Shown in pieces: positions 5,810 through 6,950 of a stretch of 64,000 bases of DNA. A model generated the notes under the pieces. The model worked only from the letters and a program-made list of their open reading frames with translations. It made no database searches and was not told the DNA's origin. The DNA is from Entomortierella parvispora E1425. Lineage: Eukaryota; Fungi; Mortierellomycota. Position 1 is the first letter of the stretch; each line of letters begins with the position of its first letter. Position numbers and translations under genes: made by a program. The stretch is taken from the NCBI GenBank assembly GCA_020891255.1, contig BQFW01000013.1, positions 1 to 64,000 on the forward strand. Direction: 5' to 3'.

Positions 5810-6950
5810 CTATACCGCTTGCTTGTGCCGTTGATATTCTCGTTCAAGCTTGAGCCATTGCTTCCTAGGATGAACAAAGATTTGTGTGAATGCCAGCATT
5901 TGCTTCAGAAAGTGTGCGGTTACGTCTCTCGTGGTTACGGTTGGTACATACATAGGCATCACACGGACGGTATTATTCCTGGACAGTATAGTGTTGGCCA
6001 TAACAGTGCATAGGCTTCTTGATGAGTATTCCACGAAACAGAATCCTTGGAAAAAGCGTGTCTCCTTGTACCCGTAAGGCCGTATCACAGTTTGCTGAAT
6101 AAGCGTCTCTGTATCTGAGCCATCCTTGGGTAATTCCTCTGACTTTTCAGAGTCTACAGCATGTGCTTGAGCAACAGCATTTGAACAAGGCAAAAGTAAT
6201 TGCTTGAACACAATATCTGGCTTGGCCTCATGTCCAGTTATATCCACATCATCCACGAATAGCATCCTGTCTACTGCCTCCGATTCATCATATGCTTGAC
6301 TTCTTCGGACCATATCCAGATCAGGATGCAACTGTTGGAAACCAAAACGAACATTGCGCAAGTTAAAACAAAGCTCCAAAAGTACAAAACTTAGAAGACA
6401 ACTCGAGCCAACCGACCTCAAGGCGCCCTTTTGCATCATATTTTATCGCTCGCCGCAGTTGATTATCGCTGAGGTCCTCTGGAAGGAAACACCTTTCCCG
6501 GATCGATGAAAAGTCAATGTCTACACAAAGGAGTTTAGAGAAAAAAGGGATGTCAGTCCTCACGGCACTCAGTCCTTTAGGCTTCCTCGCAACAGAAACC
6601 TCCAGCTTACATTGAGTACCATCCTGTCCGATGCAAGAGAGAAGGGTCTTGTCAAATAGAATATTCAAATCTGCGAGGCAATGCTCGATTTGAACAACCA
6701 CATCCTTCAATTTTTGGCGTCCTGTCAGTGGAGTTTCCCGCATGATTCGAAATGGATGCGAGTGGATGTTCCTAATGTCAGCGGTCCGGTAGAGATAATA
6801 GACAACTTTGTTGAATGGAGCACTCGTGCTTGTCCGCTTGCTGGTACCTCTGTAGTCGCGAGTATGTGTGTCGGTGTCAACGGTGTCTGCAAATGAATGT
6901 GCGTTTTTGAAGTCGACGATGGCGCGAAAGGAGCTTCCCCATCCATCCAT
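5810..6950 (-). CDS. La-related protein, LARP7-like (La motif + RRM1 + following helix); introns 6610-6521, 6416-6332, 5951-5865; start at 6950 or 6743
   Basis: After splicing: La motif KLKDVVVQIEHCLADLNILFDKTLLSCIGQDGTQ|YIDFSS...LRRAIKYDAKGRLE|LHPDLDMVRR; RRM with RMLFVDDV and YKETRFFQGFCFVEYSS (RNP1); then RVMPM|KQWLKLEREYQRHKQA, resembling LARP7 [15 protein letters not shown]. Donors GTAAGC, GTCGGT, GTATGT with YAG acceptors. Confidence 0.75.

Follow-up and report, generated by a model that had tools for sequence, protein, structure and literature searches.

The sequence analysed here (the window) comprises positions 1 to 64,000 of contig BQFW01000013.1 from the fungus Entomortierella parvispora E1425 (Mortierellomycota); near its beginning, at positions 5810-6743 of the minus strand, lies a gene of four exons (6743..6611, 6520..6417, 6331..5952, 5864..5813; stop codon TAG at 5812..5810) for a protein of 223 amino acids (aa) with similarity to LARP7 of the La superfamily. 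The product corresponds to the NCBI entry GJJ76864.1 (P0001, EMPS_09223, Entomortierella parvispora, 223 aa), with 100% identity in every exon piece (tblastn against the window); the gaps of this alignment coincided exactly with two further stretches that had been translated in the original prediction for the locus, which was made from the letters of the DNA and their open reading frames (ORFs). The splice model is based on this database protein and on conservation across orthologs, and consists of the following parts (lengths in nucleotides, nt).

Positions 6611..6743, minus strand: exon 1, codons 1-44 and one base of codon 45, with the start ATG at 6743..6741 (tblastn; the orthologs share this methionine); encodes the La-motif helices alpha1-alpha2 and within them IEHC-LAD-LNILFDKTL
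Positions 6521..6610, minus strand: intron 1, 90 nt, GTAAGC...TAG; its 30 would-be residues are absent from P0001 and from all orthologs
Positions 6417..6520, minus strand: exon 2, from the second base of codon 45 to codon 79; central portion of the La motif as far as ...AIKYDAKGRLE
Positions 6332..6416, minus strand: intron 2, 85 nt, GT...AG; the sole intron recognised in the original prediction
Positions 5952..6331, minus strand: exon 3, codons 80-205 and two bases of codon 206; wing of the La motif (LHPDLDMVRR), linker and first RNA recognition motif (RRM1)
Positions 5865..5951, minus strand: intron 3, 87 nt, GTATGT...TAG; neither P0001 nor any of the 16 orthologs annotated with the last exon contains its 29 would-be residues
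Positions 5810..5864, minus strand: exon 4, the last base of codon 206 to codon 223 and the stop codon; post-RRM1 helix KQWLKLEREYQRHKQAV
Positions 6744..6950, minus strand: upstream in-frame extension of the ORF, 69 codons from an ATG at 6950, with a counterpart in no ortholog

Between 6950 and 5810 the minus strand contains two long ORFs, which had been joined by a single intron; introns 1 and 3 (6610..6521 and 5951..5865) are in frame and free of stop codons and were for this reason read through as protein. All three introns, including intron 2 (6416..6332), follow the GT-AG rule, so that six of six splice sites are canonical, and the reading frame is intact. The intron positions are conserved in Lobosporangium transversale and in the closest relative of the E. 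parvispora gene, which is found on a metagenome contig (L002); the position of intron 1, too, is occupied in both. Annotated ortholog starts lie 0-4 residues before a conserved M-P-x-V-P-S-G-R, to which the ATG at 6743 corresponds here; as judged from this comparison, the extension 6744..6950 is most likely 5' untranslated region and not coding. In consequence, the proposed spliced minus-strand gene was real and both sequence strings quoted for it, QIEHCLAD and DKTL, are indeed present, but its one-intron structure had to be replaced by one with three introns and its start at 6950, which adds 69 residues found in no ortholog, by that at 6743. Within exon 3, RRM1 is recognisable by its RNP2 (LFVDDV), a variable acidic insert and its RNP1 (FFQGFCFVEY); the exon ends with ...VRVMP.

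A word search with the downstream ORF retrieved 37 proteins of 120-252 aa in length (not of about 350 aa), all named ones of which belong to Mortierellaceae and only one to E. parvispora. The 31 orthologs that were aligned (alignment A1) span at least 10 genera of this family and share 48 invariant columns. Both RNP1 (FFQGFCYVEF) and RNP2 (LFVDDI) are invariant in 31 species, with every aromatic position kept, and two further segments are invariant or nearly so, i.e. the La-motif wing QLRRAIKYDA..LELHPE..VRR and the transition into the post-RRM1 helix, VRVMPM-KQW.KLE.EY. The latter has the form of the LARP7-type helix (LRVLSK-x-x-W-x-x-LK-x-EYL): VRVMPM-KQW-x-KLE-x-EY is unchanged throughout the complete orthologs, and W209, L212, E215 and Y216 are present in all 16 (16/16) sequences having the last exon. 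A codon comparison with the gene on L002, performed exon by exon over 219 codons, yielded a ratio of nonsynonymous to synonymous substitution rates (dN/dS) of 0.096 at a dS of 0.69; the gene is under strong purifying selection.

Of the 31 public gene models of the family, fifteen stop at ...VRVMPM and miss the small last exon with its conserved KQW.KLE.EY helix (P0004, P0006, P0007, P0011, P0014, P0016, P0017, P0021, P0023, P0025, P0027, P0029, P0031, P0034, P0037), and the N-terminal exons are wrong in two models (P0020, P0029).

Direct searches for domains were negative: Pfam revealed nothing above threshold in the two raw ORFs or in any of the 31 family members (best La match 12.9 bits versus a cut-off of 37.1), and phmmer with the single exon-ORF sequences found no match in the PDB. 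The profile of A1, however, placed human LARP7 (4wkr) first in the PDB, at an expectation value (E) of 0.0015 over La motif and RNP1. According to the AlphaFold2 model computed with A1 (mean predicted local distance difference score, pLDDT, 87.2; predicted template modelling score, pTM, 0.81), residues 8-89 form a helical winged-helix domain, residues 102-205 an RRM whose insert is partly disordered, and residues 206-222 a terminal helix. The best 14 matches of this model in a Foldseek search of the PDB were all La modules (human La, E 2.9e-6; LARP7 7slp, 4.4e-5; p65 8gap, 1.8e-3); human La (Z 11.8; 169 aa; root-mean-square deviation, rmsd, 4.3) and LARP7 (Z 11.7; 174 aa; rmsd 4.9) headed the VIA-align list, and the look-alikes in the ESM Atlas, whether found by features or by structure, were clusters of La and LARP7. 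The model thus shows the predicted fold to be that of a La module, in which the La-motif winged helix is directly followed by RRM1, as in LARP7 (7slp, 4wkr), and by the helix alpha3; the proposed sequence of La motif, RRM1 and post-RRM helix (KQWLKLEREY) was accordingly found again by model, Foldseek and VIA-align alike. Since the profile finds LARP7 first and the structure matches are all La modules, the resemblance is considered to exceed chance.

The residues that bind the UUU-3'OH end of RNA in La proteins were located in the family through its alignment with LARP7 4wkr and counted by column among the 31 orthologs. Named after human La, these positions are occupied as follows.

Q20: Leu in 25 of 27; Gln in E. 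parvispora
Y23: His (22) or Arg
Y24: His in 27; Cys in E. parvispora
D33: Asp or Glu, the sole pocket position retained
F35: Asp or Gln; Thr in E. parvispora
F55: Ile or Val; Cys in E. parvispora
N56: Pro
R57: Ala or Glu

The UUU-3'OH pocket of LARP7 (equivalents of Q20, Y23, Y24, D33, F35, F55) is consequently not conserved, and the pattern of genuine La, Q-x-E-Y-Y-F-x-D-x-N-L...D-x-F-L, has given way to the family consensus L-I-E-H-H-L-S-D-L-x-L-x-F-D-K-D-L. The degeneration of the La motif at the UUU-3'OH-binding positions, including the missing phenylalanine at the F55-equivalent, had been foreseen and is borne out by these counts; they confirm, as far as can be judged from the alignment, that the degenerate motif has been fixed family-wide in a new form (IEHHLSD) and has not undergone random erosion. 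The consensus of Mucorales LARP7, LETYFSDANLLWDK, is already partly degenerate at the same pocket sites.

A second characteristic of LARP7 proteins, the C-terminal xRRM (RRM2, with an RNP3 Y/W-x-D/Q and an extended alpha3), was not detected. All 16 orthologs annotated with the last exon end 7-11 residues beyond the EY of the helix (the E. parvispora protein 7 residues beyond, at residue 223), and Pfam was blank for the domain. Both the 64-kb window and the 21-kb Lobosporangium locus L001 were searched by six-frame hmmsearch (best E 0.45) and by tblastn with Mucorales xRRM sequences, and no xRRM came to light in either; no neighbouring gene at the loci L001, L003 and L004 carries a Pfam xRRM or RRM_3 domain, and a domain with sequence similarity to the RRM2 of Pof8 was likewise not found. 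Three Mucorales xRRM segments produced weak tblastn matches at 27.0-27.2 kb of the window, which were dismissed as noise: they fall into a helical, HEAT-like ORF that reaches an E of only 0.45 with the xRRM hidden Markov model (HMM). Of the two explanations offered in the original prediction for the missing xRRM, a La-module-only type agrees with the uniform ends of the complete orthologs, whereas a truncated gene does not agree with a dN/dS of 0.10 and a conservation in at least 10 genera, which speak against decay as well.

As to the branch of the La superfamily from which the family descends, its closest sequence relatives are LARP7 proteins. An exhaustive search of 1.84 billion representative proteins with the A1 HMM gave 15 matches, only two of which lie outside Mortierellaceae-type fragments, namely Syncephalastrum racemosum P0047 (5.5e-6) and Phycomyces nitens P0048 (6.2e-5); both carry the Pfam domains La, RRM_1 and xRRM. 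P0048 in turn matched human LARP7 with an E of 3e-23 over the La module, a 21-residue segment and the xRRM, but human La with an E of only 1.3e-4, its best La-type match being the trypanosome La motif 1s29 (5.3e-5). In direct profile alignments (hhalign), A1 matched the Mucorales alignment A2 with 98.5% probability (E 1.8e-15, 181 columns, from the La motif to the end of the helix) and the Phycomyces LARP7-type protein P0048 with 97.5% (E 7.8e-12, 176 columns), in contrast to 52% (E 1.4e-4, 106 columns, La motif only) and 4% (E 0.01, 43 columns) for P0095 and P0096, which were classed as genuine La from their PDB matches. In the PDB search with A1, the La motifs of LARP6 (E 0.03-0.04) came next after LARP7, and human La was not listed even at E<=10. 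The signature W..L..EY(L) of the post-RRM1 helix is common to the family, to Mucorales, to Endogonales and to human LARP7, whereas the three La sequences inspected have Y...K.EE. These comparisons show the family, on the evidence of sequence profiles, to be homologous to the LARP7-type proteins of Mucorales, so that the LARP7-like character proposed initially holds: the nearest relatives beyond Mortierellaceae are Mucorales proteins of La, RRM1 and xRRM that match human LARP7, and the helix is of LARP7 type. Membership in LARP6, which combines a La motif with an RRM-L3 and a C-terminal SUZ-C/LSA motif, was rejected, as the likeness of the La motif is weak (E 0.03), no SUZ-C was found by Pfam and RRM1 aligns to LARP7-type proteins. 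Lobosporangium transversale, also of Mortierellaceae, possesses a classical genuine La (LtrLa) and a full-length LARP1 (PMC7928011); in view of these two, the family would add a third La-motif protein distinct from both. No canonical LARP7 from Mortierellaceae was retrieved when Phycomyces LARP7 or the Mucorales alignment served as query in word-based searches; given the limited reach of these searches, this is weak evidence of absence.

Apart from the gene, the following features of the window and of related loci were recorded.

Positions 14..159: array of 14 telomere repeats of the unit CCCTAAAAAA (opposite strand, TTTTTTAGGG), the length of the T tract varying from 5 to 7; outside the gene
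Positions 26700-28240, minus strand: multi-exon gene with HEAT/ARM-like helical repeats, which drew the weak spurious matches of the xRRM queries
Positions 29435-29515, minus strand: tRNA gene (Rfam scan)
Positions 40569-40642, plus strand: tRNA gene (Rfam scan)
L001 2028-7452, L003 6244-12633 and L004 11437-19546: conserved Ariadne-cyclophilin-VMA21-methyltransferase neighbourhood

A distance of 5.65 kb separates the telomere array from the stop codon. The ortholog in Lobosporangium (L001), Linnemannia elongata (L003) and Mortierella alpina (L004) adjoins a block of genes for an Ariadne E3 ligase, a cyclophilin, VMA21 and a methyltransferase, which is not present in the 64-kb window; in M. 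alpina the gene is situated in the middle of a 144-kb contig. In the metagenome contig of the closest relative, the gene order is the same as, and collinear with, that of the window at 5-16.4 kb. In both Entomortierella sequences the gene stands head-to-head with a TET/JBP-like gene (7102-9444 in the window); this neighbour was considered as a conserved partner and discarded, there being no synteny with L001, L003 and L004. Judging from gene order, the near-telomere position is a relocation specific to the Entomortierella lineage and carries no functional significance; since the ortholog of other genera lies elsewhere, next to a different block, telomere proximity is not taken as evidence for a telomeric function. 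Of the earlier hint drawn from a distance of 6 kb, what stands is the presence of the array at 14-159, its proximity being incidental and confined to the Entomortierella lineage.

The usual telomere repeat of fungi is TTAGGG, and TTTAGGG has been reported for Umbelopsis (PMC13042297); no paper was found that links Mortierellaceae to the 10-nt repeat CCCTAAAAAA, and this repeat would imply an unusual template in the telomerase RNA. Purine-rich tandem arrays occupy positions 1440-1644, 1833-2120 and 2319-3016 between telomere and gene (18-nt units in 11.5 and 16 copies as well as AG-rich units of 23-90 nt); the long, low-complexity ORFs to which they give rise in several frames probably do not represent genes. 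The Rfam scan of the 64-kb window matched only the two tRNAs.

With a probability of about 0.72, the gene encodes a LARP7-derived protein which consists of the La module alone, in which the UUU-3'OH pocket has been replaced, which is conserved across Mortierellaceae and which would act as a chaperone of noncoding RNA (ncRNA). RNA would still be bound, mainly by the beta-sheet of RRM1, by alpha3 and by the wing of the La motif, and a terminal oligo-U would no longer be clamped; by analogy with other LARP7 proteins, the protein may assist one structured ncRNA, or a few, in the nucleus as chaperone or assembly factor. Candidate targets are U6, on which LARP7 and Pof8-Bmc1 act (PMC10484740), telomerase RNA, which is included because Pof8 is the only fungal LARP7 of known function (PMC5805746, PMC8881624), or another RNA associated with Lsm or Bin3/MePCE proteins. 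The task of the xRRM would either have been lost or be supplied by a partner protein. A number of observations weigh against this interpretation. In the maximum likelihood (ML) tree of 24 La modules (10 Mortierellaceae, 10 Mucorales, one Endogonales, two genuine La and the contig-derived protein P0074 described below; without outgroups from LARP1, LARP4 or LARP6), the Mortierellaceae sit on a stem of about 5 substitutions/site that meets La and LARP7 at one node, i.e. in a three-way star; the structure searches do not separate La from LARP7 either, as the VIA-align Z scores tie, and with the La motif alone A1 finds LARP6 (16.5 bits) and LARP7 (15.8 bits) in the PDB at practically equal scores. 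Moreover, no family member has diverged further than the E. parvispora copy, in which 15 of 91 highly conserved positions are changed, and a canonical LARP7 or a separate xRRM protein may exist elsewhere in the genome. The phylogeny against La and LARP7 that had been suggested as a check hence ended in a star, while profile similarity and helix motif gave the LARP7-type answer; it is upon these two, and not upon a resolved phylogeny, that the assignment to LARP7 is founded.

The same star and the same tie of Z scores would also fit a diverged paralog of genuine La (Lhp1/Sla1 type) that lost first its RRM2, as in ascomycete La, and then the recognition of RNA 3' ends: Foldseek ranks human La before LARP7, ascomycete La proteins exist without RRM2 (PMC7928011), and the post-RRM1 helix of La begins with an aromatic residue, too. 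Such an origin is nevertheless very unlikely, given that the hhalign matches to genuine La are weak and confined to the La motif while those to LARP7-type proteins extend over the whole module, that human La is missing from the PDB profile matches and only LARP7-type proteins were recovered by the exhaustive HMM search, and that W..L..EY(L) is the LARP7 form of the helix. Within a LARP7 descent, it is unlikely that the protein serves telomerase exclusively, as a Pof8/p65-type subunit which would bind telomerase RNA, aid its assembly with Lsm2-8 and TERT and perhaps be tied to the T-rich repeat. The descent itself would suit this role, as would the degenerate La module of Pof8, a constitutive telomerase component (PMC5805746, PMC7928011, PMC8881624); no 7SK is known in fungi, and the telomere repeat of this contig, TTTTTTAGGG-like, is atypical. 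However, the xRRM that Pof8 and p65 need for telomerase RNA is missing, and in Pof8 mutations of the xRRM alpha3-helix mimic the full deletion (PMC8881624); in addition, the telomere-proximal position is not conserved, and telomerase is not the sole candidate since U6 is another target of LARP7/Pof8-Bmc1 (PMC10484740). The Pof8/p65-type telomerase factor of the original prediction found no support here.

Quite improbable is a complete loss of RNA binding, with the La module acting as protein-protein adaptor that docks, e.g., Lsm2-8 or Bin3/MePCE, although LARP7 and Pof8 do contact MePCE/Bmc1, Thc1 and Lsm2-8 directly (PMC8881624, PMC8917221). It would account for the disappearance of the canonical 3'-end pocket and for the fact that the most conserved segment of the La motif is the wing (QLRRAIKYDA...LELHPE..VRR) and not the oligo-U site; the aromatic residues of RNP1 and RNP2, on the other hand, are intact and invariant in 31 species. 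Intact aromatics at these places are the usual signature of an RRM that contacts nucleic acid. Finally, the E. parvispora copy in particular could be a subtelomeric duplicate that is silent or in decay, for the telomere is 5.65 kb away, purine-rich tandem arrays adjoin the gene and no other family member has diverged as far. This is hardly credible for a gene with an intact frame, canonical splice sites throughout, a dN/dS of 0.096 towards the L002 gene and the same gene order as in that contig, all the more as it is the single E. parvispora protein among the matches of the word search.

The preferred interpretation, a LARP7-derived La module without xRRM, can be set against the known systems. 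With LARP7 (human; Mucorales, e.g. Phycomyces nitens KAI9030663.1) the family shares the fold of La motif and RRM1, an RNP1 of the GFCFVEF type, the post-RRM1 segment L/VRVM-x-K-x-x-W-x-x-L-x-x-EY and a profile homology to the Mucorales proteins across the La module (98.5%). It differs by the lack of an xRRM/RRM2 and the protein end 7-11 residues past the EY of alpha3, by a pair of His-His (His-Cys in E. parvispora) in place of the pocket aromatics with the equivalents of Q20, F35, F55, N56 and R57 lost, by a variable acidic insert within RRM1 and by the very long stem branch (about 5 substitutions/site). Pof8 (Lar7) of S. pombe, which was compared through its published description, the PDB holding its xRRM only, likewise belongs to the LARP7 relatives of fungi and has a La module no longer conserved in sequence, the 3'-end pocket included (PMC7928011); but in Pof8 nothing except the xRRM, by which it is defined, resembles other LARP7 in sequence (PMC7928011), whereas the reverse applies to the family, in which the La module is recognisable and the xRRM absent. 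Tetrahymena p65 resembles it in the fold of the La module (Foldseek 8gap_H, E 1.8e-3; VIA-align Z 8.0), but two of its parts are not found in the family, the N-terminal domain and the xRRM, by which stem IV of telomerase RNA is bent. Genuine La (human SSB/La; ascomycete Lhp1/Sla1) is similar in its La-module fold (Z 11.8) and, in the case of ascomycete La, in having no second RRM; the sequence profiles agree only weakly and over no more than the La motif, the family lacks the Q, Y, Y, F and F of the pocket by which La function is defined, and Mortierellaceae have a separate classical La (LtrLa, PMC7928011).

Canonical LARP7-type proteins with La, RRM1 and xRRM (303-637 aa) were found in more than 40 species of Mucorales and in Jimgerdemannia flammicorona of the Endogonales (P0047, P0048, P0050-P0094). 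The survey of La and LARP proteins from 2020 listed no LARP7- or Pof8-like protein in early-diverging fungi (PMC7928011), and it was the only literature on LARP7 in Mucoromycota that was found; the canonical LARP7 of Mucorales/Endogonales and the xRRM-less form of Mortierellaceae thus appear to be previously undescribed. As such, the loss of RRM2 is not new, ascomycete La and some protist LARP7 proteins being earlier examples (PMC7928011). In a protein encoded by a Logan contig of 983 nt (P0074, 298 aa), too, a La module resembling that of LARP7 (FYWSDANLL..., GFAFVEF, LRVLTKKQWRTLCDEY) is accompanied by a low-complexity tail in place of the xRRM; this protein may represent another xRRM-less LARP7 relative or a truncated model.

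A more far-reaching view, which we regard as rather doubtful, is that the protein is the sole LARP7 ortholog of Mortierellaceae and performs the LARP7 task without an xRRM, either by its remodelled La module (His-His pocket, RRM1, alpha3) or together with a separate protein of xRRM function; its target would perhaps be the telomerase RNA of a lineage with T-rich telomeres or a 7SK-like ribonucleoprotein that controls transcriptional pausing in early-diverging fungi. Since the function is a proposed one and RRM2 has been lost elsewhere in the La superfamily, the importance of the finding is rated as moderate. LARP7 proteins are at present defined by the xRRM and are thought to depend on it for 7SK, telomerase RNA and U6-related RNAs; Mortierellaceae, as the lineage sister to Mucorales and Endogonales, have retained nothing but the La module, in a strongly remodelled form that is tightly constrained by purifying selection. 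The family would in this respect be a natural experiment on what the La module of LARP7 can do alone, and it offers a concrete candidate handle on the partners of noncoding ribonucleoproteins, possibly including telomerase RNA, in industrially used fungi such as Mortierella alpina.

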